Assembly: GCF_002113885.1 (NCBI RefSeq)
Contig: NW_018408028.1
Location: 556,895 to 620,894 of the forward strand
DNA length: 64,000 nt
Reading direction: 5' to 3'
From: Mizuhopecten yessoensis
Taxonomy: Eukaryota
The notes beneath the pieces are model-generated. The model made no database searches and was not told the DNA's origin. It worked only from the letters and a program-made list of their open reading frames with translations. The translations under genes and the position numbers were made by a program. The stretch's first letter is position 1; each line of letters begins with the position of its first letter. Positions 6,480-41,529 of this stretch are shown here, piece after piece.

Positions 6480-6923
6480 TTGATCCCTTATTTGGTGATG
6501 ACGATGATAGTGATGACATGTTCACAGTCTCCAAACCAAGTCCTAAACCCTCGACTATTTCCGCCACTAAACCTCCCCAGAAAACTGAGGATGTCTTTAG
6601 CCCCAACAAACCTGCCAACACTTCAGTGCCAAAACCCAAGCCTGGTCCCCTGTCTGTGGACGATGACGAGGATGATGATGACATGTTTGGTCGGAAGCCT
6701 CCCCCATTACAACTTGACTCTCCAGCTAAATCAAAAGTGGGTGATGTATTTAGTTCGTCCCCCTCCTCAGAAAGCGATATGTTTGGCTCGTCACCCCCCG
6801 CGCTAGAGGAACCACAAACGGCACCACCAAAGGTGAAGAAGCCGCCTGCGGGGGCTGTGTCCATGTTTGGTGGGGTTGATCCATTCGCAGCCATGAAGAA
6901 AAAACAAGCTGTAGAAAGTGAAA
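6480..6923 (+). CDS. WASHC2: WASHC2 exon (DPLFGDDDDSDDMF...KKPPAGAVSMFGGVDPF...ESE), phase 1->1
   Basis: ttccag acceptor, AAA|gtaagt donor; overlaps ORF 6518..6967. Confidence 0.9.
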
Positions 6924-7193
6924 GTAAGTGTTATTGTTTGATTTGTAAAATGATTGATAAATGTTAAGGGTACAGCCAACATGATGGTGGAATAATCTCG
7001 TCCTCTGTCCCTCGTCTGGATACTCAAAAGTATGCAGGACAATTGAGTAAAATGGTTTACATATTAATATAAACTTTATTTCATTTCCTTTTTTCCCCGT
7101 TTACAGTATGATGTAAAGCAATACACAATTGTTGAAATTAGATTTGTAAACAAGTTTAACAACTTATGTAGATCCGTATCCAGGTTACATATT

Positions 7194-7338
7194 CATAGAT
7201 TCAATCACAACAGGCGAAGGAGCAGGTTGTCCTTGTGGTTTATTAGGATCGCAGGTGTCTTGTAGTTTATATTAGAATAATGATTCTAATAAACTATAAG
7301 AACTAGTCGATCCTTTGCCTGTTGGGATTGAAGCTATG
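7194..7338. mobile_element. Palindromic MITE-like hairpin
   Basis: catagattcaatcacaacaggcgaagga pairs with tcctttgcctgttgggattgaagctatg; additional internal palindrome. Confidence 0.6.
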
Positions 7339-7470
7339 GTTGATGAAGAATACATCACAGCTAGGTACGACTCATACTGTCTGGATTGTGGAATGACGGA
7401 ATGCAGCATCATTGTCTATAAAATCCAATTATTACCGTTATAGCATAAATATATGTCATTGGTTCCTGTC

Positions 7471-7656
7471 CGTAATTTTTCTTGCTCTCCGTAAACCTGT
7501 TTTTCTTGCTCTCCGTAAACCTGTTTTTCATAAACCTGTTTTTCTTGCTCTCCTCAAACCTGTTTTTCGTAAACCTGTTTTTCTTGCTCTCCGTAAACCT
7601 GTTTTTCTTGCTCTCCGTAAACCTGGTTTTCTTGCTCTCCGTAATCCTGGTTTTCT
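7471..7656. repeat. ~24-bp minisatellite (cgtaaacctgtttttcttgctctc)
   Basis: Direct tandem units with partial copies. Confidence 0.85.
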
Positions 7657-7871
7657 TATTACACCTAAGATATTGCAGTTACTTATTTCATTTGTTACAT
7701 ATTGTCGTATTCTTTAGAAAAGGAGTCCAATTTTTGGAAATATTTTTGTAAGAAAGTTTATTTAAAAACGTGTCCTTTCCAGAACAGTTTTTAAGGAGTT
7801 TTATAAAATTGAAAAAATTGTACTACGAATATGTTTTACAAATAATATATGAACAAAACATGTTTTTTCAG

Positions 7872-7897
7872 AGACAGCAGAAGATTCAGAAGAACAG
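7872..7897 (+). CDS. WASHC2: WASHC2 26-nt microexon (K-TAEDSEEQ), phase 1->0
   Basis: ttttttcag acceptor and CAG|gtaatc donor; needed to reconcile the phase 1 donor at 6923 with the phase 0 acceptor at 8797. Confidence 0.75.
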
Positions 7898-8796
7898 GTA
7901 ATCATGATTATTTTTGTATTGTAGTTTTGGTGTGGCTTTACCTGGTAGTGTTTAGCTCTCTGACTTTTTCTCGTAGTGTTTTAGTAGGAGGTTTGCCTTC
8001 TGTCATGTTCTATCCTGCCTAACGAGCTTTAACAACTTACAGCCTATTTTAAAACATTCAAAACATTTCAAATTTTAGAAGATTAGATTTTTTCTTGTAA
8101 TAAATCCAATCCAAAAAAGGGAAAGAAGTAATTTCTCAAAAACTGCAGTTTATTTCATTAGGCTCTGTATCATTGAAAAAAAAATCGTATTTTAAAATTC
8201 ATAGATTCCCATTAGATAAAAAATAATTTGGAAAGGAAAAAAATCAAAAATATTATTTTGTTTTTCAAATTTGAAGATAAATAAAAAAACAAATTAAGAT
8301 ATCGACAAAAATTGAAGTTTCACTAACACTTTCTTGTTTGTGAAGCTGTCTTGAAGGAATCAGGCACAGAGTTCTACATTTTTGATTTTATAGAGTTTTA
8401 TGATAATTGCTGCAATACAATATCAATCCCACTTCAAATAGATAATTGTCACTGAATTGGTTTTCAATAAAAGATTATATAATTATGTATTCATGAAAGA
8501 ACTAAAGGATGAATATAACAACAAATTATTATGGAATATGATGTAAACATAATAAAATTTCAAGATATCAAAATGGCTGAACTTCAAACAGAACATTGTT
8601 CTGTTGCTGAAAGAACACCATGCTTTTCCTTTTTAATGGTTGTGTAGTTAGCAGATTTTCATTTAAAAAGAAACCTTTTTCTTGTATCAAATTCTTTATA
8701 TGTTAATCTGTAGTGTGTTGTGTGTGGCTTGTACTCTCTGGTTTGTGTTGTGGTTGCCTGGCTTTTTACTGACTGTAGTGATGCTTTGTTTCTTAG

Positions 8797-8973
8797 CCCT
8801 CAGCATCTGTACCTAAAAAGGCAACTTCTAACAAGGGGAGCGAACTCCCATCTCCAACCAAGGAGACAGAACCCCCGTCTCCCACCAAAGGGTTTGCCCC
8901 TTCTTCACCCACCAAGGGGCCAGAGAAAGGGTTTCCTACCAAAGGGCCCGCTGGTAAAATAGGGAAACTAAAG
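8797..8973 (+). CDS. WASHC2: WASHC2 exon (PSASVPKK...AGKIGKLK), phase 0->0
   Basis: tcttag acceptor, AAG|gtattg donor; KIGKLK leads into the conserved NIGINPAALLPG segment. Confidence 0.82.
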
Positions 8974-9318
8974 GTATTGCCCTGTAAAACAGTCTATATA
9001 ATGTATGAATGTAGCCTATATGTTGGTGTCCTATTTATCAAAATACAACAATCTAATAACAGACAGTTTCACAAATCGCTTAATTGTGGTCATTTTAAGA
9101 TTTTTCTTTCAGCAATGATTAAGGGAGATTTAAGAATATTCAATAAGGAAAACTCATAAATAAAATGTTTGTTATAGCCAGAAGTGTTTGCAGATAGAAT
9201 TATCCTGTTGAATCTTAGACATAAAAAGAGATATATTTTTCAAGCAATTTTTTATCCTATAACAGTTTTAGTATCGTTACTGATCAGAAGATGAATTACA
9301 CATACTGTTATATTACAG

Positions 9319-9444
9319 ATGAACATAGGGATCAACCCCGCTGCTCTACTACCTGGGGCGGCCCCACCTGTGAAGGAGCCAGAACCGGTCGCTATAGGAT
9401 TTGACCAGCCCGCTGAGGTCAAAACCCTACACAGCGCCTCAAAG
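9319..9444 (+). CDS. WASHC2: WASHC2 exon (MNIGINPAALLPGAAPP...TLHSASK), first half of the CPI motif
   Basis: ttacag acceptor, AAG|gtacga donor; hallmark FAM21/CAP-ZIP segment. Confidence 0.92.
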
Positions 9445-9750
9445 GTACGAAACAGAAACATGTAACCACCAGCAGACAACTTTTATACATGATCAATTGC
9501 TCATTCTTCGAATCCTCATCAAAGATAACTTTTCATGAATGCATTTTCTAGTATCAAGACAAAATACTTTATTGAAGACACCAAAAATTATTAGATAAAT
9601 TAATCAAAATACACTCAATAGTACATTTGGAGGTCGGAGCCAGAATGGTGACCTTATTACTGACATATACATTTGCAAATGTAATTGCATTTATAGTTGA
9701 GAATATTTTCTCTCAGTATTATGATGGAGGGTATATTGTGTATTTTCCAG

Positions 9751-10417
9751 GACCGTGCAAGAATACAGACGAAACGCCGCCCACCCAGTCGCATGGCTCG
9801 TCAATCAAAGGGAGATAGTAGCACCAGTGATTTATTTAGCCCTTCATCGCCACCTGGTGATGATGTTCCCAAAGAGATGCCAAAACCAGTTGTGAATAAT
9901 CGAGTGCCGCAACCAACCTCCGATCTTTTTGGTAACGATGATTTGCTGGATGGTGGCTCTACGACACCTGTCAAGTCAGCTCCTATTGTCCAAGAAAATC
10001 ACCTATTCTCAGGTGGAGCTTTCTCCTCAGGTGCTAAAGTTACAAAATCAAAAAAAGGGGTGGACGATGATTTGTTTGGAAGTCCGACTAAATCGGTTGT
10101 GAAGTCAGCGACTAGTGACGATGTATTTGATGTGTCATCTAAAAAGCCTAGTACACTAATGAACAACGATGAGGAGGAGGATTTGTTTGCTCCTAAATCT
10201 TCTAAAAGGTCTACTAAAGTTACTGATGAGGACGATATATTTTCTACGTCACAGCCAAAAGTGTCAAAACAGTTGCTAAATGACGATAACTTATTCCCTT
10301 CAAAGTCAGGAACAAAGAATGATAACTCTAAGGCGCTGCCACCTAGTGAGAAATCTACAAACGGTACTCAGAATGATGATGATATATTTGGGGGTGTAGG
10401 CACACCCAAGAAAACAG
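9751..10417 (+). CDS. WASHC2: WASHC2 exon (DRARIQTKRRPPSR...DDIFGGVGTPKKT), phase 0->1
   Basis: ttccag acceptor, CAG|gtacgg donor; within ORF 9697..10452; second half of the CPI motif and several acidic-LF motifs. Confidence 0.92.
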
Positions 10418-11207
10418 GTACGGTATTTTATTTGTACTTCTTTACCCAGTAGGTTTAGGTTAGATTCTGTTTTCCAGGCAAGAATGAGAAAAAAAAACCA
10501 GATGTATATATTTTCTCTGTAGTTTATTCCATTTAAGGCCGACAGTCCAAATTAATCAACTTCAGTTGAAATAAAATAAAATGTTCAGAATGCTTTTGAG
10601 ATGATCCCTTCTATTGACCATCTTGTCTGGCCATCATATCCAAGGAAATACTTTAGCGGGGCAGAGGTATGGTGAGCCTGGCTCATTTTGTGTCAGTTTA
10701 ACACCTGACCCTAACTTTTCGCTCTTTCAATGAATTATCAATTTTAACAATTATAGATTACTTCTGTAGGAAAGATAAATTCATCAAAACTTGAGTGTAT
10801 AGCGCCTATTATATAGTCTTCACTTCAAAATCCCTAATTGATTTTATTGATTACAACTGTAAATACCAATTGTACAGTAGTTTTTAGTATCATGTAGTTG
10901 TATAAATAGTTGTATAATCTATTCATTTTATTAAGATTCCAGGAGTGAGGTGTGGGGTGTGTGGAGTGATAAATATGTAATGTAAACAAGACCTCCTCAA
11001 TGATGCTATTTCCTTTGTGACCAACAGGACTTAGGTCCTTCCTCTATATGACTGAGGAATGATTTACGTAGAATATCTTTCTGTAAATGAAGGAAGTTCA
11101 CTCAATTAATTTACATTACTTGTTCGTTTTGAAACATGATATTTTCCTGTTGTCTATTTCAGATATGAAATTTGAGGTTTCTGATTTTCCCCTGTTGTCT
11201 ATTTCAG

Positions 11208-11738: not shown

Positions 11739-14700
11739 GTATGTGTAGGGATATCATCGTATAAGACCCGGATGGTTAAGGTATGTGTAGGGATATCATG
11801 ATATAAGACACGGATAGTTTAGGTATGTGTAGGGATATCATCGTATAAGACCCGGATGGTTAAGGTATGTGTAGGGATGTCATGGTATAAGACACGGATA
11901 GTTTAGGTATGTGTAGGGATATCATGGTATAAGACTCGGATGGTTTAGGTATGTGTAGGGATAACATCGTATAAGACACGGAGGGTTTAGGTATGTGTAG
12001 GGATACCATGGTATAAGACACGGAGGGTTTAGGTATGTGTAGGGATATCATTGTATAAGACACGGATGGTTAAGGTATGTGTAGGGATATCATGATATAA
12101 GACACGGATAGTTTAGGTATGTGTAGGGATATCATCGTATAAGAGACGGAGGGTTTAGGTATGTGTAGGGATATCATCGTATAAGAGACGGAGGGTTTAG
12201 GTATGTGTAGGGATATCATGGTATAAGACACTGATGGTTTAGGTATGTGTAGGAATATTGTCGTATAAGACACGGATGGTTTAGGTATGTGTAGGGATAT
12301 CATCGTATAAGACACGGATGGTTTAGGTATGTGTAGGGATATCATCGTATAAGACACGGATGGTTTAGGTATGTGTAGGGATATCATCGTATAAGACACG
12401 GATGGTTTAGGTATGTGTAGGGATATCATCGTATAAGACACGGATGGTTTAGGTATGTGTAGGGATATCATCGTATAAGACACGGATGGTTTAGGTATGT
12501 GTAGGGATATCATCGTATAAGACACGGATGGTTTAGGTATGTGTAGGGATATCATCGTATAAGACACGGATGGTTTAGGTATGTGTAGGGATATCATCGT
12601 ATAAGACACGGATGGTTTAGGTATGTGTAGGGATATCATCGTATAAGACACGGATGGTTTAGGTATGTGTAGGGATATCATCGTATAAGACACGGATGGT
12701 TTAGGTATGTGTAGGGATATCATCGTATAAGACACGGATGGTTTAGGTATGTGTAGGGATATCATCGTATAAGACACGGATGGTTTAGGTATGTGTAGGG
12801 ATATCATCGTATAAGACACGGATGGTTTAGGTATGTGTAGGGATATCATCGTATAAGACACGGATGGTTTAGGTATGTGTAGGGATATCATCGTATAAGA
12901 CACGGATGGTTTAGGTATGTGTAGGGATATCATCGTATAAGACACGGATGGTTTAGGTATGTGTAGGGATATCATCGTATAAGACACGGATGGTTTAGGT
13001 ATGTGTAGGGATATCATCGTATAAGACACGGATGGTTTAGGTATGTGTAGGGATATCATCGTATAAGACACGGATGGTTTAGGTATGTGTAGGGATATCA
13101 TCGTATAAGACACGGATGGTTTAGGTATGTGTAGGGATATCATCGTATAAGACACGGATGGTTTAGGTATGTGTAGGGATATCATCGTATAAGACACGGA
13201 TGGTTTAGGTATGTGTAGGGATATCATCGTATAAGACACGGATGGTTTAGGTATGTGTAGGGATATCATCGTATAAGACACGGATGGTTTAGGTATGTGT
13301 AGGGATATCATCGTATAAGACACGGATGGTTTAGGTATGTGTAGGGATATCATCGTATAAGACACGGATGGTTTAGGTATGTGTAGGGATATCATCGTAT
13401 AAGACACGGATGGTTTAGGTATGTGTAGGGATATCATCGTATAAGACACGGATGGTTTAGGTATGTGTAGGGATATCATCGTATAAGACACGGATGGTTT
13501 AGGTATGTGTAGGGATATCATCGTATAAGACACGGATGGTTTAGGTATGTGTAGGGATATCATCGTATAAGACACGGATGGTTTAGGTATGTGTAGGGAT
13601 ATCATCGTATAAGACACGGATGGTTTAGGTATGTGTAGGGATATCATCGTATAAGACACGGATGGTTTAGGTATGTGTAGGGATATCATCGTATAAGACA
13701 CGGATGGTTTAGGTATGTGTAGGGATATCATCGTATAAGACACGGATGGTTTAGGTATGTGTAGGGATATCATCGTATAAGACACGGATGGTTTAGGTAT
13801 GTGTAGGGATATCATCGTATAAGACACGGATGGTTTAGGTATGTGTAGGGATATCATCGTATAAGACACGGATGGTTTAGGTATGTGTAGGGATATCATC
13901 GTATAAGACACGGATGGTTTAGGTATGTGTAGGGATATCATCGTATAAGACACGGATGGTTTAGGTATGTGTAGGGATATCATCGTATAAGACACGGATG
14001 GTTTAGGTATGTGTAGGGATATCATCGTATAAGACACGGATGGTTTAGGTATGTGTAGGGATATCATCGTATAAGACACGGATGGTTTAGGTATGTGTAG
14101 GGATATCATCGTATAAGACACGGATGGTTTAGGTATGTGTAGGGATATCATCGTATAAGACACGGATGGTTTAGGTATGTGTAGGGATATCATCGTATAA
14201 GACACGGATGGTTTAGGTATGTGTAGGGATATCATCGTATAAGACACGGATGGTTTAGGTATGTGTAGGGATATCATCGTATAAGACACGGATGGTTTAG
14301 GTATGTGTAGGGATATCATCGTATAAGACACGGATGGTTTAGGTATGTGTAGGGATATCATCGTATAAGACACGGATGGTTTAGGTATGTGTAGGGATAT
14401 CATCGTATAAGACACGGATGGTTTAGGTATGTGTAGGGATATCATCGTATAAGACACGGATGGTTTAGGTATGTGTAGGGATATCATCGTATAAGACACG
14501 GATGGTTTAGGTATGTGTAGGGATATCATCGTATAAGACACGGATGGTTTAGGTATGTGTAGGGATATCATCGTATAAGACACGGATGGTTTAGGTATGT
14601 GTAGGGATATCATCGTATAAGACACGGATGGTTTAGGTATGTGTAGGGATATCATCGTATAAGACACGGATGGTTTAGGTATGTGTAGGGATATCATCGT

Positions 14701-16433
14701 ATAAGACACGGATGGTTTAGGTATGTGTAGGGATATCATCGTATAAGACACGGATGGTTTAGGTATGTGTAGGGATATCATCGTATAAGACACGGATGGT
14801 TTAGGTATGTGTAGGGATATCATCGTATAAGACACGGATGGTTTAGGTATGTGTAGGGATATCATCGTATAAGACACGGATGGTTTAGGTATGTGTAGGG
14901 ATATCATCGTATAAGACACGGATGGTTTAGGTATGTGTAGGGATATCATCGTATAAGACACGGATGGTTTAGGTATGTGTAGGGATATCATCGTATAAGA
15001 CACGGATGGTTTAGGTATGTGTAGGGATATCATCGTATAAGACACGGATGGTTTAGGTATGTGTAGGGATATCATCGTATAAGACACGGATGGTTTAGGT
15101 ATGTGTAGGGATATCATCGTATAAGACACGGATGGTTTAGGTATGTGTAGGGATATCATCGTATAAGACACGGATGGTTTAGGTATGTGTAGGGATATCA
15201 TCGTATAAGACACGGATGGTTTAGGTATGTGTAGGGATATCATCGTATAAGACACGGATGGTTTAGGTATGTGTAGGGATATCATCGTATAAGACACGGA
15301 TGGTTTAGGTATGTGTAGGGATATCATCGTATAAGACACGGATGGTTTAGGTATGTGTAGGGATATCATCGTATAAGACACGGATGGTTTAGGTATGTGT
15401 AGGGATATCATCGTATAAGACACGGATGGTTTAGGTATGTGTAGGGATATCATCGTATAAGACACGGATGGTTTAGGTATGTGTAGGGATATCATCGTAT
15501 AAGACACGGATGGTTTAGGTATGTGTAGGGATATCATCGTATAAGACACGGATGGTTTAGGTATGTGTAGGGATATCATCGTATAAGACACGGATGGTTT
15601 AGGTATGTGTAGGGATATCATCGTATAAGACACGGATGGTTTAGGTATGTGTAGGGATATCATCGTATAAGACACGGATGGTTTAGGTATGTGTAGGGAT
15701 ATCATCGTATAAGACACGGATGGTTTAGGTATGTGTAGGGATATCATCGTATAAGACACGGATGGTTTAGGTATGTGTAGGGATATCATCGTATAAGACA
15801 CGGATGGTTTAGGTATGTGTAGGGATATCATCGTATAAGACACGGATGGTTTAGGTATGTGTAGGGATATCATCGTATAAGACACGGATGGTTTAGGTAT
15901 GTGTAGGGATATCATCGTATAAGACACGGATGGTTTAGGTATGTGTAGGGATATCATCGTATAAGACACGGATGGTTTAGGTATGTGTAGGGATATCATC
16001 GTATAAGACACGGATGGTTTAGGTATGTGTAGGGATATCATCGTATAAGACACGGATGGTTTAGGTATGTGTAGGGATATCATCGTATAAGACACGGATG
16101 GTTTAGGTATGTGTAGGGATATCATCGTATAAGACACGGATGGTTTAGGTATGTGTAGGGATATCATCGTATAAGACACGGATGGTTTAGGTATGTGTAG
16201 GGATATCATCGTATAAGACACGGATGGTTTAGGTATGTGTAGGGATATCATCGTATAAGACACGGATGGTTTAGGTATGTGTAGGGATATCATGGTATAA
16301 GACACGGATGGTTTAGGTATGTGTAGGGATATCATCGTATAAGACACGGATGGTTTAGGTATGTGTAGGGATATCATCGTATAACTAGACACCGATGGTT
16401 TAGGTATGTGTAGGGATATCATCGAAAAAGACA
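11721..16433 (+). repeat. 42-bp minisatellite (aagacacggatggtttaggtatgtgtagggatatcatcgtat), about 112 copies, built from the WASHC2 exon/intron junction
   Basis: About 4.7 kb / 42 bp; centre essentially invariant, edges variant; first unit overlaps the coding exon end. Confidence 0.97.
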
Positions 16434-17051
16434 TGGTTACTTAAACCTCTTGTCAGACACATATTATACTGGGAAATATTGCCTTTTTCGCCCTCCATAA
16501 TGAGGTTGAATTTATCATTACAGCCAACCTTAGTCAACAACATAATATACATAGTAATAAAATGTGAAGGACGAATTTAACACTGGGCAAATATGGATTA
16601 TACCGGCAAAGGGTGAAAGTTTCCTGGTAAAGAGTAATTGTAACTTTTATACATTGTACAAGCATGGAACAAATTATTGTGAATCGGTTATTACAAAAGG
16701 TGTTCCAATGGTACTAATGTACATGTGTTTCCATTACACAGCCCCGAGATAAATCTACCAAAAATGCTGTAATAAACTCCCCACAGCCAGAACTACGGTA
16801 CTGTTCAATCAGGGACAAATCATGTTGTCATGTCATATTCTAACTATGACGGAAATTCACAGATGATTTATGGTCATTTAGATTTGTCTGTGTGAAATAT
16901 CCATTTTAGTATTTGGCTGCAAAATAAACATCCCAATTTGAAATCAAATGTAGATTCTTTTATTCTTCCCTATTGAAGTTATTCATGAACAAAAACACTG
17001 ATTTACAAGCCAAATTGATCATCAATACATACTTGTTCTCCCTTGTTGCAG

Positions 17052-21107: not shown

Positions 21108-21868
21108 TTATCCTTCCTGGGACCAACCAGTATCCTTGGTCAGGTCTTGCGACATATCATGTGACTGAGAAAGTTCTGATATGTCATGTGACTGAGAAAG
21201 TTCTGATATGTCATGTGACCTAGGAACGTCCTGTGATAGAGATGAGTCATGTGACCCCTGACGTAGATCCTCTCGCTGAAGCCTGAGGTGTACTCTCTCC
21301 ATGGCCTTGGAATGTGAAGCCACATCATGTGACACAGACACGTTTCCTTCGGTATGTGAATCCACATCCATGGCAGTAGTATGTGAAACACTGACACTTG
21401 AATCACCTCCAGAAGTTTGTGAAGCACCGGGACTGTCCATTAGATGAGACACATTTCCTGAAGTCTCAAAACCTAACAGAGAGCTACTTTTGTCCAGCTG
21501 CCATAGTAGCATTGACCTACTTTTATCTAGGTCACAAGACAACAGTGACCTAGTCTTTTCAATGTCACTTGAATGTTGTACAGATTCTTGTGATGTTTCA
21601 TCATCTTCTTCATTTGTTTCTAATTTCTTTTGACTAATCCGTTTTTCTCTCTGTCGTTCATTTTTCCACCATATTTTGACCTTGGCAGCAGTGACCTTGG
21701 GCCTTTCTAAGCGCACATGACCTTTATTGAGTTCGTCTGCGAAGTTTTTAAGTTTTGCGTTTGTGGGATTCTTACATTGTTTGTACCACTTCCTCATCTG
21801 AGGCACCTCGTGTTCTGGGTGGAAGGTCATTCGAGTGTCCCTAGGACTGGACTTGTCTTCTGAGAAAC
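21108..21868 (-). CDS. SATB-like arm terminal exon B3: one Dve-type homeodomain plus Ser/His-rich tail
   Basis: ttgttccag acceptor in phase 1, in frame with ORF 21108..21830; HD TRMTFHPEHEVPQMRKWY...KVKIWWKNERQREKR. Confidence 0.88.
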
Positions 21869-22429: not shown

Positions 22430-22535
22430 CTCTGACATGTTGGATCTTAATTTTGTACCAATCCCCAAACTCACGGCACTTCTCTGCACTCAGCTTGCTC
22501 TCATACTTCCAGTTGGCTATGTAGGAGATTGTTGA
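22430..22535 (-). CDS. SATB-like arm exon B2: CUTL second half (STISYIANWKYESKLSAEKCREFGDWYKIKIQHVR), phase 0->1
   Basis: ttctcttag acceptor, GAG|gtaaac donor; matches SATB [8 protein letters not shown]...[13 protein letters not shown] (recalled). Confidence 0.88.
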
Positions 22536-22950
22536 CTAAGAGAAAAGAAGATGTACACTTAAAATATCTAGTGAGTGAGGAATGTTAATGTGAAGAAACA
22601 TGTAGTGGTTCTGTGAGAAAAAAGGTTTCAAATTTATCACCGTACATTTTGGAATTTTTTTTCTTCTAATTTCAGCTGTTAAATTTCATCTTTTAATTTT
22701 TTGTAACTTTGTTTAGACCTAGTAGCTTCAACTCAATTGGCATCACAGAGGTCTGAAACTTTGATGTTCTGACCATGATCTGAAAATTCACAAGGTACAA
22801 AAATTCATGAGTTTTGAAGCATTTGTGAAAAAAGTGAAATAGAAACCTTTGTGAATATTAGCAACTTTTCAAAAGTCCTATCAAAAGTCCGATCTACACA
22901 GGTTTCTTACATGTAAAAAGACACAGTAAAACACTCAATTAAAATTGTAC

Positions 22951-23068
22951 CTGAGTCAGTGGACATTCCTTGGCTAGAGCAGACTGACTGGATTCCCTAA
23001 GTAGGGAAAGGACGGCACACCTTACAGAATGGTCAGTCCAGGTATCGGGCACGGTGAACCCAGAGGAA
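22951..23068 (-). CDS. SATB-like arm exon B1: CUTL first half (SSGFTVPDTWTDHSVRCAVLSLLRESSQSALAKECPLTQ), phase 2->0
   Basis: tttacag acceptor, CAG|gtacaa donor; QSALAKECPLTQ closely matches SATB1/2 CUTL [12 protein letters not shown] (recalled). Confidence 0.88.
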
Positions 23069-23148: not shown

Positions 23149-23424
23149 CCTGGCCCCGTATTCAGGAAACCATTCTCATGCTCAAGCATGGATTATGTGA
23201 TCATGCCAACTTTCTCGTAACTCACTTAAATTAGGTGTCACAATCACAGAGTCAATTGTTATCAATGTAAACTGTAACAGTTTATAGTCTATCCAATTTT
23301 TACATAATTTTGACAAAATGTGATTTAATTTATCTAAATTTATCTCCTTAACAAGATAAATATTATGTTTGAGCACTGAATGTGAGTTTGAGCATGAGAA
23401 CGGTGTCATGAATACAGGCCCAGG
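23149..23424. mobile_element. MITE with ~37-bp TIRs (Harbinger-like ends)
   Basis: cctggccccgtattcaggaaaccattctcatgctcaa / ttgagcatgagaacggtgtcatgaatacaggcccagg. Confidence 0.75.
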
Positions 23425-23989: not shown

Positions 23990-24756
23990 CCATTGACCAT
24001 CAGGTAGCTCAGTGTTGACCATCAGGTAGCTCAGTGTTGGCTTGAGTGACAGAATCCATTGACCATCAGGTAGCTCAGTGTTGGCTCGAGGGACAGGATC
24101 CGTAGACCATCAGGTAGCTCAGTGTTGGCTCGAGGGACAGGATCCGTAGACCATCAGGTAGCTCAGTGTGGGCTCGAGTGACAGAATCCCTTGACCATCA
24201 GGTAGATCAGTGTTGGCTCGAGGGACAGAATCCATTGATCATCAGGTAGCTAAGTGTTGGCTCGAGGGACAGAATCCATTGACCATCAGGGAGCTCAGTG
24301 TTGGCTCGAGTGACAGAATCCATTGTCCATCAGGTAGCTCAGTGTTGGCTCGACTGACAGAATCCATTGACCATCAGGTAGATCAGTGTTGGCTCCGGTG
24401 ACAGAATCCATTGACCATCAGGGAGCTCAGTGTTGGCTCGAGTGACAGAATCCATTGACAATCAGGTAGCTCAGTGTTGGCTCGAGGGACAGAATCCATT
24501 GACCATCAGGTAGCTCAGTGTTGGCTCGAGTGACAGGATCCGTAGACCATCAGGTAGCTCAGTGTGGGCTCGAGTGACAGAATCCATTGACCATCAGGTA
24601 GCTCAGTGTTGGCTCGGGTGACAGGATCCGTAGACCATCAGGTAGCTCAGTGTTGGCTCGAGGGACAGAATCCATTGACCATCAGGTAGCTCAGTGTTGG
24701 CTCGAGTGACAGAATAACTATTCGAGGTCCAGGGTTTGAATCCTGGTCTAGTACCC
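23990..24756 (+). repeat. 44-bp minisatellite (about 16 copies) formed from the head of a tRNA-derived SINE, ending in the B-box
   Basis: Unit ccattgaccatcaggtagctcagtgttggctcgagtgacagaat; the last unit continues ...gaggtccagggtttgaatcctggtctag. Confidence 0.85.
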
Positions 24757-25299
24757 CCACTAGTTTTTACGCTCAAAACAATTTTGTTGATTATGTTGTA
24801 TTTATTTCGTCTGCATTATTTCTCATAAATGGCCCAAGTTATGGTTTGCTTTTCAGGAATCGTTTATCAGACCTATGAATAGTTACAGGTTTTGGCATAG
24901 GAACATGGATCCTTAATAGAGAATTTCCATAACTTGTGACAGTTGTTTATTATATTTTTTTGTCTCTCATAAGCCTCGTAACTTTTTGAAATTTGAAAAT
25001 TAAGTGGCTCATAGAAAATATTATAAACAACAGTGACTGGTTATGAAGTTAATTTAGCATGTATTGTAATATCATCTGTAACTCTCATAATAACAAATAT
25101 ATCAAAACAACCATCAACACATTACAGACATTTGTAGGAGAGACAACTCTCAATGTGTACTTGTGTTTGAAGACAACCTGAACATGTTAAGGTAGCCAAC
25201 TCTAGGTGGGTACTTTATAGGTTTGAAATTAACACTCAGTGTTAATCCAACATTTGAACGAGAGACAATCTTCAAATTAATGTCAGTCAGATATCTTTG

Positions 25300-26995
25300 G
25301 GGCTAACAACCCTCAATGTGTACTATGACTCTAAATGTGTACCTGATTTTTGTAGGGAGACAACCCTCAACATGTACCTGATTTTTGTAGGGGAGACAAC
25401 CCTCAACATGTACATGATACTTGTAGGGGAGACAACCCTCAACATATACACGATACTTGTAGGGGAGACAACCCTCAATGTGTACCTGATATTTGCCAGG
25501 GGAGACAACCCTCAATTTGTATCAGATGTTTGCCAGGGGAGACAACCCTCAATGTGTACCTGATATTTGCCAGTGGAGACAACCCTCAATTTATAGCTGA
25601 TATTTGCCAGGGAGACAAACCTCAATGCATACCCGATATTTGTATGGGAAACAACCTCGACGGGTACCTGATCTTTGTAGGGGGGACAACCATTATTATT
25701 ATTTCTCATCAATTTTACAGCGTGTCTGATTGGTTTAAACGCATCACATGAAAGGATTATAAAACATTGAGTCTCCCTCATGCGATCCATTTTCCCTGTC
25801 GAGTATCCCTCTCGGAACCCCTCACATATTATCCGACAAGTTGTCTCTCTTTGTTAGACTCTCAATCACCTGATGCATTCCGGAAGGCACCATAAACATC
25901 AACAATGGCTGTGAACGGGAGATTCCACCTCCCAACAGCTGAAGAACATGAAGGGCTATTATTGTTGTTCAATTTGATGTAACATCAAAACACTGACAGT
26001 GATAGGTATTTGTAGTATATACATGCAGCCAGACCTAACGTTACATTGCCTAATGTTGATGTATTTTTGTTATATGTACATAGGACACAGATTCCACAGA
26101 TGGAATTTCGGAATAATAAAACAGTTATTGCCCTGGTGAGAGACCTGAAGAGTTGTTCCCCCTCGATATATCATGTTTTCTGAGGGCGAATATGTACCTG
26201 ATATTTGCCAGGGAAACAACCTTCTATGTGTACCTGATATTTGCAAGGGGATACAAACCTCAATGTGTACTCCATATTGGTAGAGGAGACAACCCTCAAT
26301 TTATAGCTGATATTTGCTAGGGGAGACAACCCTCAATGTGTACCTGATATTTGCCAGGGAGATAACCCTCAATGCATACCCGATATTTGTATGGGAGACA
26401 AACTCGGTGTGTACCTGATCCTTGTAGGGGAGACAACCATTAATATGTACCTGATATTTGCCTGGGAGCCAACCCTCAATGTGTACCTGATATTTGTATG
26501 GGAGACAAACTTGATGTGTACCTGATCCTTGTAGCGGAGCCAACCATTAATATGTACCTGATATGTGTCTGGGAGCCAACCCTCAATGTGTACCCGATAT
26601 TTGTATGGGAGACAAACTCGGTGTGTACCTGATCCTTGTAGGGGAGACAACCATTAATATGTACCTGATATGTGCCTGGGAGCCAACCCTCAATGTGTAC
26701 CCGATATTTGTATGGGAGACAACCTCGATGTGTACCTGATCCTTGTAGGGGAGACAACCATTAATATGTACCTGCTATTTGCCTGGGAGCCAACCCTCAA
26801 TGTGTACCCGATATTTGCCTGGGAGCCAACCCTTAATGTCCAACCGATATTTGCCTGGGAGCCAACCCTCAATGTGTACCTGATGCTTGTAGGGGAGACA
26901 ACCCTCAATGTGTACCCAATATTTGCATTACTAATGGAACATTCTTGATACATAGTATTTATAGGGGAGAAGATAACCCTGATATTTGTAAGGGA
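25300..26995. repeat. ~35-bp minisatellite (ggagacaaccctcaatgtgtacctgatatttgtag) split by a ~500-bp insertion at about 25692-26190
   Basis: The same unit occurs on both sides of an unrelated block. Confidence 0.88.
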
Positions 26996-29863
26996 GACAG
27001 CCCTAAATGTGAATGTGATATTTGTTAAAGGATGGAAGACAACAGTTAATATCATTATATGTAGCTGATACTTGTCAACCTAAACTTGCACTGGATGTTT
27101 GTTATTGATAAAATCCTTGATGACAGAACAGAAAACACAACATGTAAATATCTTAACCATGACAAGATTTTATTGCATATCAGAACAACAACTTTTGGCA
27201 TTAATGATGAAACACCTGATTTCCAATAATTTACCATTAAACGATGAAAACATGAAATAAATACCATGTAAAATATCTGTTATATTAATAATCTCTTCGT
27301 GCACACTTCCGCGACGAACCATGGACAGGGTTCAACTACATATCAACTAATAAAAAGTATGCAATTAAATTGTTATCTAAAACATTAAATATTGCTACAA
27401 TGTATAATTGCATGGCTTAATCATCATCAACTACCTATAAACATTGTGACAACTTGTACAAATTAACCATGACACCATCTTAATGATTGTACTACAGTTT
27501 TCTTCTCATCTTCAAATCGTCACACAGGACCTGAACATTGTGCAAAAGGGAATAAACCCACTCCTCGTCACTGACAGGTGGTGGGCGACTAAATCTCTAT
27601 AACAACCCATCAACTACCATCTTATAAACATATGAAGCATTCTTTAAGAAGATAGACATTATACATACTATGTATATGCTACTGAAGTACAGTGTACTAA
27701 GGAATTCCACAAAGAATTCTATTCTATGTTTTGAGATATTATAAATCTTTCCGATATCTCACCAATGATGATTTGTTTGAGGTAAAGATAGTATTCTGAA
27801 CACTTCACACCATATGACCCTAATAGTTCTTATTTTTATAAGAATATTGTGTCACGGTAAAATATAAATACACTCATAAACGTGGGGAAATATTATCTTA
27901 ATGCAAATAATTTGCATTTGTTATCACATTTTGTTGACGGAGTTACAGAAAACAAGTTACATGTTTAAGATCAGAGGACAATCATAGCATTAGAATAAGT
28001 ACTACTGCAATCATGACAACGACACAATTACCATGGCAACAGTATATTACTTGACATGTTTCCATGACAACACTTACTGGTCTCAACATAGTGAACTTGT
28101 TTCTGTGACATACTCTATCATTACATCAAAGTTTACAAACAAAACCTCTCCCGATTGGATAGCAACAATTAACACAGTCATTACAAAGTTTCACGTGTCT
28201 CCATTACCTTATCAAAGCTGGAATTGAGTTTTCTATATCACAACTTGAGATCTCTGAGATTTGTGATTGGATGGTTGTAAAAGCTGATATCCAATGGGGA
28301 GATTTTCCGTTCACATCGTAAGTATGGATAAACACATCCATTAGTCTAAGTGTTAAATTAATCACCTGTTAATCTAAACAACAGCAAAGATGTTTATAAA
28401 ACTGTTCTCACCCATACAGTAATGTCAAGAGATTTAACTTTTTTCATAATCATTTAATATCCAAACTGAATTTCCTCATGCAAAAATATTTTAACCTTCT
28501 CTGTACATACAGATTGTCAAATAGAATATATATTGTAATGCTTATAGGTCACAAGACGCCGTTCAAAAATATGTCATCAGTGATTTAAAGCTCGAACTAC
28601 AAAACTAATGCTGTTACAGGTCCAACTAATATTCAGGGGAGATAACTGCATAAACAGGGGAGATAATATCACTACTTGAGAGTTAGTAATGATAGCCATT
28701 ATGTATGTTAACTAATTACCATCATGATTAACCTTTCTATCTCCAGGGTAAACATTAGACTTGAGATCCTTTCACCCCTAGAAATATAAAAGAACCCTAT
28801 TTAACACCTAGTAATCCAGTTTTATATCAGCACTTATAAGTTTTGGGTTTCCGATCAGTTGCATCTCTATATCTACAATGTAACACTACTTTTGAAGAAG
28901 ACGTTTTATGACAAATCAGTGTTTTGGATGGGTTTTGAAAGTGGGAGGGGTGAGAGGATCCGGAGGCAAAGTATATTTTGCATAACACTTTTCTATTGAA
29001 AGACAATGGGTTAGACCTTCTCCTGTTTATCATAAAAAGTCCTTATCTTACATAAAAATTCATCGATTCCTGTTTCACAGAACTCTTGAAAAAAGGTCAC
29101 AGAACTAACTTTCCAATGAATTCCTACAAATTTCCTTTCAAAGACCAGTTATATCATCTTAACTGATCAGATTTTAAAATTGAGTCATTTCTTTCAAGGT
29201 TTGAGTATTTAACACAAAAATTCCAATTGTTTTACAAAAAATTACAATGAGAAAGGCCTTTATATCTACAACACATGTTCTAATAAACCAACTAGGCATG
29301 GGTCTTTATATGGTACTGACAACCAGCATATAGATCTTATATTCATTAACGAATAACTAACTCGGACGAGATTGTCTCGGCACCTTATTATCTAGTTGTC
29401 ATTTTAGTCAAACATTTATACGGCTATTGTTTTGTGCCGTAAATGTTGATTAAATCCTTCAGGCCAAACAATTACCAAGACATATAGAGTAAGTGAACGT
29501 GGACAGGATCACTGTATATACCATCTATATCTACCAAACTGACTACAACAGTACAGTTTCCACCAATAGAAGTATCAACAATTTAATAAAAACACAATTC
29601 ACAAATCTCAGTACATTATATAAAAAATTTGATTTCAGGATATGATAGACAATATTGGATAGCATTATCTGAAATGCAAGTTAAAATTAACTCTGACTTC
29701 TAAAACATTAATTCGTTAACTAAGTGTAATTTAAAATCAACTCTGACTTTCTCAGAAGTGAATTATTTACTAAGATAAAAAAAAAAAATGAGCTTGGTAG
29801 GGGAAAGTTGACATCTTCGGCAGTAGCAATGTAATGTAGTAGGACGAGGAATAGTGATAGATA

Positions 29864-36900: not shown

Positions 36901-38412
36901 TCAGTCTAAATGAGAGGTAACTCTCATGCGTTTGACTTTAGCTCGGTGGTTCTTAAACCACAGCTGAACATTTTTTGGCTCTAGTTTTGGAAACTTTTGC
37001 CTATAATCGGAGCGATTAAGGTCCTCGCAGTATTTATCAATCATGTACGACGATGGGTGTGTGTCTTCTGTAAACCACTTCTCAAGTTTCGGGATCTCTG
37101 TCATGGGATCAATGAAGACTCGCGTGCGCCGTTTACGGTGAGCATTTCCTGGGCTTGCTTTGTGATGAGGATGCTGCGATTGCTGTTGTTGCTGGTGCTG
37201 ATGATGTTGAAGTCTTGCAGCAGCAGACTGCTGTGCCATGAAGTGAGTATTCATCGGAAAGTAGTGCATGGCCAGGGGGTGGGGAAAGTGGGGGATGTGT
37301 AGGGGCTGGTGGAGGCCACTTGTTGGGGTTGTCGGCATCCTTGATATATGGTTGCTGAGGTAGTCCGCCTCTGAGAAGTCCTTATTGTAGGATAGAGATG
37401 AAAGTTTATGACTAGATTCTGAATCCTCGTTTGATTGTTCCTCATAATCTGACTCCATGTCATCGTCATCTTCCGAGTCAGACATGTGCATGCCGTTGGA
37501 TTGTGGTGCCTCACGCTCCCCCATGCTTATTCGATCTACATCGTCCTTGACCCCTTTAATGAGATCTGTCACACACTCACCATCTCCTAAATCTGGTGTC
37601 TCCTCCTTAATGCTGACTGGAGACTTTTCTTGATGCGTTTCCATGGTGTCCATGGCCTCCACTTCCTCATCTGCACTATCTGACTTGCTGTCACATAAGT
37701 CTTTCTCCTTCTTAATATCTGGACTAGAGACTGGCCTTCGGGATTGGGACAGGTCACATGGCTCTTTGGACTGGTCATGTGACGAGTCATGTGACATGAA
37801 GGGACCGTGGTAAGGGTAGGGGACAATATACACAGCATTTTTATTGGGCAAGTAGGGAACATTACGATCAATTGTAACGGGACTGTTCTCCAATCCCTCC
37901 TCCATTTCAAAAGAGTTATCATCAAAGTTTCTAGAAGCCCGACGATGAGCTGCTCGAGCGTTTTTGAACCAGTAGATTATATTGGTGAGATCTAATGGAC
38001 GTCTTCCTTTGCGAGATTCCAGTTTATTCAACTCTTCGAGAAACCGAATCATTTGCTCTCTTGTAGGGTGCTGGCACTCTGCAAACCATTTCTGGAGACG
38101 GGGAATTTCATGCTCAGGATCGAAAGATGTGCGCATCCTAGTCTTGCCGTGATTCAGACCCGTAAGTGAGGTGAGTGGAGGGCTGTGATTGGCTGGGCTG
38201 TTGCTGAAGTGATTCTCGTGGGCAGCTACAGTGCCATTGATGGTGCCATTGAGAGCCTTTTCGGGAGAGCGTAGATCTTCAGGTGCCCCATTCTGCTCCT
38301 GAGACTTTTTGGCTTTCTCTACTTGTTCATCATACCACTTGTCAAACGCACAGCGCACATCATGCGGAAGACTAGACAGTGTGTCACCCTTGGTAATGGA
38401 GGAGAGCAGAGA
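36901..38412 (-). CDS. dve: Dve arm terminal exon A2: rest of the divergent CUTL plus two atypical K50 homeodomains
   Basis: ORF 36901..38424, ttgcag acceptor; HD1 RMRTSFDPEHEIPRLQKWF...YWFKNARA, HD2 RTRVFIDPMTEIPKLEKWF...LWFKNHRA, both with the Dve-type helix2-3 insertion. Confidence 0.93.
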   Translation of the reverse strand, partial: SLLSSITKGDTLSSLPHDVRCAFDKWYDEQVEKAKKSQEQNGAPEDLRSPEKALNGTINGTVAAHENHFSNSPANHSPPLTSLTGLNHGKTRMRTSFDPEHEIPRLQKWFAECQHPTREQMIRFLEELNKLESRKGRRPLDLTNIIYWFKNARAAHRRASRNFDDNSFEMEEGLENSPVTIDRNVPYLPNKNAVYIVPYPYHGPFMSHDSSHDQSKEPCDLSQSRRPVSSPDIKKEKDLCDSKSDSADEEVEAMDTMETHQEKSPVSIKEETPDLGDGECVTDLIKGVKDDVDRISMGEREAPQSNGMHMSDSEDDDDMESDYEEQSNEDSESSHKLSSLSYNKDFSEADYLSNHISRMPTTPTSGLHQPLHIPHFPHPLAMHYFPMNTHFMAQQSAAARLQHHQHQQQQQSQHPHHKASPGNAHRKRRTRVFIDPMTEIPKLEKWFTEDTHPSSYMIDKYCEDLNRSDYRQKFPKLEPKNVQLWFKNHRAKVKRMRVTSHLD

Positions 38413-39007: not shown

Positions 39008-39113
39008 CTTTTCTATGGGACAGCCGGATGTGAGGAGGAGCCCGTGTGATTGGGTAAGGAGAAGTTGTAGTAATTTACTCTTCACTTCGTCGGTAGAGCT
39101 CAACTTTGATTGG
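39008..39113 (-). CDS. dve: Dve arm exon A1 (QSKLSSTDEVKSKLLQLLLTQSHGLLLTSGCPIEK), phase 2->0
   Basis: tttccag acceptor, AAG|gtgagt donor; resembles the Dve KLLxLLxxQSHxxLxxxGCP segment. Confidence 0.88.
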
Positions 39114-39773: not shown

Positions 39774-39900
39774 CTGCTGAGGCGTATCCGCAGTGTCGCC
39801 ACCTGTGTCAGTTCTCCCCAAATATCTTCCAGTGTTGCTTTTTCGTCATCAGTGATAACTTCGAAGGTCAAAGGTCGCCAGTTCTTGATTTGTACTGCAC
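39774..39900 (-). CDS. dve: ULD/COMPASS exon 2 (GAVQIKNWRPLTFEVITDDEKATLEDIWGELTQVATLRIRLS), 127 nt, phase 1->2
   Basis: aacag acceptor, CAG|gtatca donor; not in the ORF track, translated by hand; matches the C-terminal half of the ULD. Confidence 0.9.
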
Positions 39901-41328: not shown

Positions 41329-41529
41329 CTTTAGCACTGATGGCCTCTGAGGGGTTGTATCCCAGTTTGATAAGTGCGGTCCTCACAACTTCGCCGAAAA
41401 GGGTGGTACTGGGAAGTATCGCGTAGGAATCCAGCTCCACGGAACTGTTGGAGCCACACTCCGGGGTGTCAAAGGTCACGACCCCTGTTGTTTGCTCAAT
41501 GATGCAATGCACAGGTAACGACTTTGTAC
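41329..41529 (-). CDS. dve: COMPASS/dve-SATB family gene: ULD/COMPASS exon 1 (GTKSLPVHCIIEQ...LIKLGYNPSEAISAK), phase 1->1
   Basis: ttccag acceptor, AAG|gtaacc donor; LPVxCxxE and ALxxLGY motifs typical of the SATB/Dve N-terminal ubiquitin-like domain. Confidence 0.9.

Follow-up and report, generated by a model that had tools for sequence, protein, structure and literature searches.

A two-armed Compass gene in the scallop Mizuhopecten yessoensis and the likely descent of vertebrate SATB from its CMPl-type isoform

The closest described counterpart of the gene considered here is the Cmp/Cmpl locus of sea urchins and hemichordates (Cavalieri et al. 2013, PMC3784565), through which a two-armed locus has been known in ambulacrarians since 2013 (PMC3784565). 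As in the scallop, a common N-terminus bearing the Compass domain is followed either by a two-exon CMP arm with two homeodomains or by an alternative three-exon CMPl arm with one W48 homeodomain. CMPl was published as an ambulacrarian-only protein without a vertebrate homologue, and in sea urchins it is CMPl, not CMP, that binds the sns5 insulator via its homeodomain (PMC3784565). Vertebrate SATB1 and SATB2 likewise begin with the Compass domain (ULD), which is followed by a CUTL domain, the two CUT domains CUT1 and CUT2, and an F48 homeodomain without an insertion between helices 2 and 3. Dve, DVE-1 and amphioxus Compass combine the ULD with two W48 homeodomains carrying 10-residue insertions. 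In reviews from 2015 and 2023, the Compass domain is the sole connection drawn between CMP and SATB; a shuffling origin of SATB is stated again in a 2024 paper. In one sentence, Pradhan et al. 2021 (PMC8526749) mention SATB homologues in Mizuhopecten yessoensis and in the spider Parasteatoda tepidariorum, which are most likely the same B proteins as those described below; the relevant passages of that paper treat them as SATB genes with all three domains, and mention neither the ULD shared with Dve, nor CMPl, nor the introns, nor the missing true CUT domains. Thus, the system is partly known, from the ambulacrarian two-armed locus (2013) and from the scallop and spider “SATB homologues” (2021). 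A search of the openly accessible literature returned no paper that unites CMPl with the scallop and spider proteins or derives SATB from arm B.

The window, a stretch of 64,000 nucleotides of the M. yessoensis genome, harbors the scallop's single Compass/dve gene, a Compass-family homeobox gene with seven coding exons on the minus strand. The exons, the homeodomains within them and the features beyond the window are as follows:

41329..41529, minus strand: ULD1, common to both arms; 201 nt, phase 1-1; first part of the ULD/COMPASS domain (PF16534, E 1.5e-14)
39774..39900, minus strand: ULD2, common to both arms; 127 nt, phase 1-2; its donor is the A/B branch point
39008..39113, minus strand: A1 (arm A); 106 nt, phase 2-0; first half of a diverged CUTL-like domain
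36901..38412, minus strand: A2 (arm A, last exon); 1512 nt; second half of the diverged CUTL, then two homeodomains, then the stop
about 38133-37960 and 37131-36925, minus strand: the A2 homeodomains, both W48 with 10-residue insertions
22951..23068, minus strand: B1 (arm B); 118 nt, phase 2-0; first half of a SATB-type CUTL
22430..22535, minus strand: B2 (arm B); 106 nt, phase 0-1; second half of the SATB-type CUTL, then a phase-1 intron
21108..21868, minus strand: B3 (arm B, last exon); 761 nt; one homeodomain, a low-complexity tail and the stop
about 21833-21636, minus strand: the B3 homeodomain, CMPl-type W48-W49-K50 with a 10-residue insertion
G000:C4701 about 628540-629124 and 641896-642033, upstream of the window: two further coding exons common to both arms
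G000:C4701:674218-680058, plus strand, outside the window: the TM9SF (EMP70) gene

All exons in the window are bounded by AG/GT splice sites, and both the A path and the B path are in frame; the lengths and phases that the initial annotation had given for ULD1, ULD2, B1 and B2 are confirmed, as is its translation of B1 and B2. The spliced gene model was searched one exon at a time, with the B isoform P0026 and the A isoform of a very close relative, P0102, as reference proteins. Pfam placed the ULD on ULD1 and ULD2 and the homeodomains on A2 (two) and B3 (one). The comparison of the two arms against the Pfam CUTL model (PF16557), which the initial annotation had proposed, gave matches on B1 (E 7e-5) and, over the cut-off, on B2 (E 5e-7), and none on A1 or A2. 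The B path corresponds to M. yessoensis protein OWF44677.1 (P0026), named “DNA-binding protein SATB2” by NCBI. The scallop genome has one ULD locus, and arm B thus has no ULD of its own. Elsewhere in the window, a short high-copy repeat at 23155-23210, immediately before the B1 acceptor, is deeply covered by unrelated transcripts; a candidate WASHC2/FAM21-like gene, named from its motifs, has exons at 6518-10452 on the plus strand and lies tail-to-tail with arm B; and a 39-nt minisatellite occupies about 4.4 kb (12070-16434), with other tandem arrays at ~24000-27000. A simple scan of the large upstream intron revealed no evident nested gene.

The ULD2-B1, B1-B2 and B2-B3 joints are all backed by RNA from public scallop runs. 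Raw reads cross the B2-B3 joint three times and the B1-B2 joint once, and assembled contigs contain both. Contigs from two studies, which are spliced and whose runs were typed as RNA by guess, extend past B1 into letters mapping to 39777-39806, the end of ULD2; hence, ULD2 is joined to B1 over 16.7 kb with arm A skipped; A1 lies 660 nt from the ULD2 donor. The ULD2-A1 joint is based on canonical splice sites and on the A protein P0102 of the very close relative. In oyster, a protein combining the ULD with arm B is backed by dozens of contigs of roughly 2 kb each.

In its N-terminal half isoform B is organized like SATB, with a ULD/COMPASS domain (PF16534 on both ULD exons, joined to B1 by RNA) followed by a SATB-type CUTL recognized by Pfam, PDB and fold matches. 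Unlike SATB, however, it is one of two alternative products of a gene whose other product is Dve, and it is devoid of CUT1 and CUT2: Pfam detects no CUT domain in B3, and the five PF02376 matches in the scallop genome all lie on other contigs. Its homeodomain, too, is of the CMP type (W48, K50 and a 10-residue helix 2-3 insertion), in contrast to the F48 version of SATB; a search of the scallop genome with the hagfish SATB homeodomain returned nothing significant and did not recover the Compass locus. In view of the absent CUT domains and the different homeodomain, isoform B is not a SATB member. On the other hand, it resembles CMPl in pairing the Compass domain with a single W48 homeodomain, in being encoded by a three-exon arm whose use and that of the gene's two-exon CMP arm are mutually exclusive, and in its homeodomain, which clusters with those of the Amphiura, Diadema and Ptychodera B arms (100/99) in a sequence set without Paracentrotus. 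More broadly, all 17 B rows in the homeodomain tree, drawn from three bilaterian clades, form one group (100/99). The one departure from published CMPl lies in the K/R-rich helix 2-3 insertion, which is 11 residues long in CMPl, in four chelicerates, in Amphiura and in Ptychodera but 10 in the scallop and other spiralians. Arm B is thus orthologous to sea-urchin CMPl, and we classify isoform B as an orthologous variant of CMPl that, being one residue shorter, falls outside the published definition. Isoform A is a typical CMP/Dve protein, with the Compass domain, two W48 homeodomains with 10-residue insertions and no CUT domain.

Two observations bear on these domains in other settings. Besides those of Onecut and the three of Cux, the scallop genome encodes a fifth, divergent CUT domain (L015 = G000:C5266:177083-177313), possibly related to amphioxus Acut. 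In the crinoid, arm A (P0128; L003:16478-16633) contains a third, degenerate homeodomain-like stretch, and no exon for a B homeodomain turned up in the 3 kb past B2.

The initial annotation had described the CUTL domain of arm B as far more SATB-like than that of the Dve arm, and this holds. Across 64 aligned columns, identity to six vertebrate SATB rows is 38-58% for 20 B arms and 10-33% for 19 A arms, the scallop values being 53% for arm B and 22% for arm A. Profiles built without vertebrates score the SATB1 CUTL at 109 bits for the invertebrate B arms and 44 bits (43.8) for the A arms. PDB searches with B1 alone and with B2 alone each returned SATB1 CUTL chains as their sole matches; these chains also read the same as the SATB1 sequence that the annotation had given. 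Ten columns join SATB to arm B alone and one joins it to arm A alone. The spacing between a helix-1 hydrophobic residue and a Cys-Pro motif is 20 residues in 20/20 B rows and 6/6 SATB rows, as against 21 in 17/17 scorable A rows, amphioxus included. The predicted arm B CUTL has the same fold as the SATB1 CUTL (1.1-1.8 A rmsd), which is also the top, if weak (E 1.3), match of the arm A model in a fold search. A Gln, Gln, Ser and Asn set in the CUTL helix is present in 95-100% of B rows and mostly gone from protostome arm A. The A and B profiles nevertheless match one another (E 5e-13), which indicates that the arms are duplicates and that arm A also has a CUTL, albeit a diverged one, in contrast to the reviews that tie CMP to SATB by the Compass domain alone. 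In ambulacrarians, the second CUTL exon of arm A is itself B-like and retains several SATB-like residues; hence, a part of the likeness between arm B and SATB is ancestral.

Intron positions offer a further line of evidence. SATB introns were read from one fully mapped vertebrate gene, teleost satb2 (L002), rather than from human DNA, and from read-through fragments. The satb2 exons measure 186 nt (1-1), 127 (1-2), 124 (2-0) and 103 (0-1), matching the phase series, the 127-nt second ULD exon and the phase-1 intron after CUTL that the annotation had given for SATB. Four SATB-type fragments enter an intron directly after the mid-CUTL Gln, and two of the fragments, P0141 and P0162, are identical to the PDB SATB1 sequence across the first CUTL exon. 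Among B arms, that of Lingula has exons of 118 and 106 nt, as in the scallop. The earlier claim that arm B shares its intron positions with SATB accordingly stands in that all phases match, but its first four introns are uninformative: they also occur in arm A at all mapped loci outside insects (two are missing from the wasp gene), so that only the fifth, the phase-1 intron after CUTL, separates the arms, and the common phases 1-1-2-0 were dropped as evidence for B over A. This fifth intron is present in 5/5 B arms (scallop, Lingula, leech, spider and crinoid) and in fish satb2, and in 0/6 A arms (scallop, Lingula, crinoid, amphioxus, millipede and wasp). It lies 8-13 codons past the last conserved CUTL Trp, with the phase fixed and the exact codon not. 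Its absence from the Dve arm had been correctly noted, A2 (1512 nt) being uninterrupted from mid-CUTL to the stop. Separately, fish satb2 (L002:7162-11404) has a phase-0 intron directly after the recognition-helix Gln in each of CUTL, CUT1 and CUT2, and the CUT domains of scallop Onecut and Cux (L011-L014) are uninterrupted by introns. The satb2 phase-0 introns may have been gained in parallel at a CAG|G proto-splice site, or they may go back to a common origin, or to conversion, with the CUTL exons.

B-type proteins are found in bivalves, gastropods, a leech, spiders, a scorpion, a horseshoe crab, ticks, a mite and a sea spider, and among ambulacrarians in a brittle star, sea urchins, a crinoid and a hemichordate; a brachiopod (Lingula) also has arm B. 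Their presence in spiralians, chelicerates and ambulacrarians places the SATB-type CUTL before the protostome/deuterostome split, as had been proposed. The layout of A followed by B behind one ULD recurs in Lingula DNA, in crinoid DNA and in a hemichordate gene model, and tick A and B proteins are 98-99% identical to each other in the ULD. Two genes, L005 of a spider and L004 of a leech, carry no arm other than B; in spiders, the A proteins are separate and their ULD differs. In Parasteatoda (L005; P0029, P0043), the B-only gene sits beside TM9SF and the A-type genes lie on another large scaffold. It thus appears that spiders divided the arms among duplicate genes, possibly through isoform partitioning after genome duplication; ticks keep one two-armed gene. 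The TM9SF gene is head-to-head with the Compass gene in the scallop, Potamilus, Lingula, a spider and a millipede, which supports the orthology of these loci.

Among Dve, DVE-1 and amphioxus Compass genes, the loci that we tested lack arm B: at the amphioxus and millipede loci, where the next gene follows within 3-6 kb, and at the wasp locus, where 10 kb of flank was examined, arm A alone was found. Amphioxus thus kept only arm A. The proposal that insects and nematodes did so as well agrees with the A-only wasp and millipede loci; for nematodes, it rests on a lack of matches, since the best 150 representatives included no identifiable B-type match from an insect, crustacean or nematode, a weak indication of absence. 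Public annotations fuse arms A and B into one protein in Ptychodera and Anneissia (P0105, P0128) and present arm B as a separate ULD-less gene in Lingula (L010:30190-32980), Mytilus, Pinctada, Saccostrea and Diadema. Such mangled models may be the reason that arm B was overlooked. Multiple B-type proteins occur in the sea spider Nymphon and in the snail Nucella (P0171, P0233, P0050, P0067), and P0217 (JGI) is a very divergent B-type protein.

On the whole, we hold with a good deal of confidence the reading in which a single Compass gene carries two mutually exclusive 3' cassettes and arm B gave rise to SATB. In a CUTL tree built on a short alignment of 64 columns, from which Lingula arm B was left out as from the other trees, arm A is separated from B plus SATB at 99/98. 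The descent of vertebrate SATB from the B isoform of a two-armed gene, first put forward in the initial annotation, is supported by AU tests, the spacing indel and the phase-1 intron, the latter two of which carry the argument independently of rates. When hypotheses were fully specified on the species tree (LG+F+G4, three long rows left out), an origin of SATB from arm B was not rejected (p 0.195), whereas an origin from arm A was (p 0.014 and 0.026, AU). The ULD tree has no A/B split and places SATB as a long branch among spider A rows; it was used solely for the absence of the split and not for the position of SATB. An alternative is that SATB arose not from the B isoform itself but from a third ancient copy, sister to arm B and lost in invertebrates, which we consider improbable. 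The unconstrained CUTL tree does place SATB beside the whole B group (87/100) and not with deuterostome B, and this topology is about 4 log units better than one nesting SATB with ambulacrarian B. Yet the nested arrangement is not rejected either, whether fully specified, as above, or as a simple constraint (p 0.16 (0.164)), the scallop has a single ULD locus, the ULDs of SATB and of the B-only genes do not cluster, and a third copy requires repeated losses.

Still less probable, in our judgment, is the standing model, by which SATB arose from an amphioxus-like Compass gene, that is from arm A, through shuffling with Onecut, its likeness to arm B being a retained ancestral state. The SATB-like residues kept in the second CUTL exon of ambulacrarian arm A speak for this model, amphioxus, the nearest relative sampled, has only arm A, and a looser constraint that pairs SATB solely with the long A branch of amphioxus is not rejected (p 0.29). 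However, beyond the rejection of its species-tree versions, it has to reverse a one-residue insertion common to all A arms, regain the first Trp, gain the phase-1 intron and accommodate the 10 columns against one that favor arm B; the indel and the intron already largely refute it. A mollusc- or protostome-specific duplication of arm A, with convergence of the copy on SATB and CMPl, could draw on the 10-residue insertion of the mollusc B homeodomain, which is like that of arm A and not like the 11 residues of CMPl. Chelicerate B arms have the 11-residue insertion, however, and B homeodomains and B CUTLs cluster across phyla. A clade of scallop A and scallop B, the grouping that would have told against the initial annotation, did not appear and is rejected (p-AU 5e-5), as are separate duplications in protostomes and deuterostomes (p 0.010, AU). 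Lineage-specific duplication is thus already refuted by the tests run, and we give it hardly any credence.

Under the preferred derivation of SATB from arm B, a module of CUTL and homeodomain would have been duplicated in tandem before the protostome/deuterostome split to yield arms A and B. The phase-2 donor after ULD2 is spliced either to A1, giving the Dve/CMP isoform (ULD, diverged CUTL and two homeodomains), or to B1, giving the CMPl isoform (ULD, SATB-type CUTL and one homeodomain). Vertebrates would have lost arm A and exchanged the B homeodomain exon (B3), past the phase-1 intron, for a part encoding CUT-CUT-homeodomain, thereby forming SATB; arm B would have been lost in amphioxus, mandibulates and probably nematodes. 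By eye, SATB CUT1 and CUT2 resemble the ordinary CUT domains of Onecut and Cux, and the SATB homeodomain shows no relation to that of arm B; both points agree with the shuffling model published for the 3' half of SATB. That a brachiopod, ticks and echinoderms share the two-ended layout points to retention of one end of the gene by vertebrates and of the other by flies, worms and amphioxus.

The biochemistry of SATB1 offers a guide to the possible role of isoform B. SATB1 ULD tetramers are required for DNA binding, and its CUTL retains residues used by CUT1 on DNA (PMC3351170). By analogy, isoform B may act like the N-terminal half of SATB, oligomerizing via the ULD, in which the SATB1 tetramer motif is only partly kept (K-N-W for K-W-N), and contacting DNA via the helix-turn-helix of its CUTL, with the homeodomain providing specificity as in sea-urchin CMPl. 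Arm A, from which the Gln, Ser and Asn of the CUTL helix are largely gone, would instead depend on its two homeodomains. Mixed A/B oligomers may also form, as a candidate mode of interaction.

We consider it likely that the common ancestor of protostomes and deuterostomes possessed a two-armed gene, with SATB as the surviving B (CMPl) arm, Dve, DVE-1 and amphioxus Compass as the surviving A arm, and spiders having split the arms, such that sea-urchin CMPl would be the true invertebrate counterpart of SATB and the genome-organizer activity would date from early bilaterians. This corrects the published claims that the Cmp/Cmpl locus marks Ambulacraria, that CMPl lacks a vertebrate homologue and that the Compass domain is the only link of SATB to invertebrate genes. 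It also shifts the choice of an invertebrate proxy for SATB1/2, a medically studied gene family: Dve of the fly and DVE-1 of the worm, commonly used as SATB models, would be orthologous to it in the ULD only, their DNA-binding part being the sister arm, and amphioxus would have seemed a poor intermediate because the relevant arm was lost there. More generally, the locus would present a clear case of two transcription-factor families emerging from two splice isoforms of one gene via reciprocal loss, and the B isoforms of oyster, tick and sea urchin make the origin of the chromatin-organizing activity of SATB testable.
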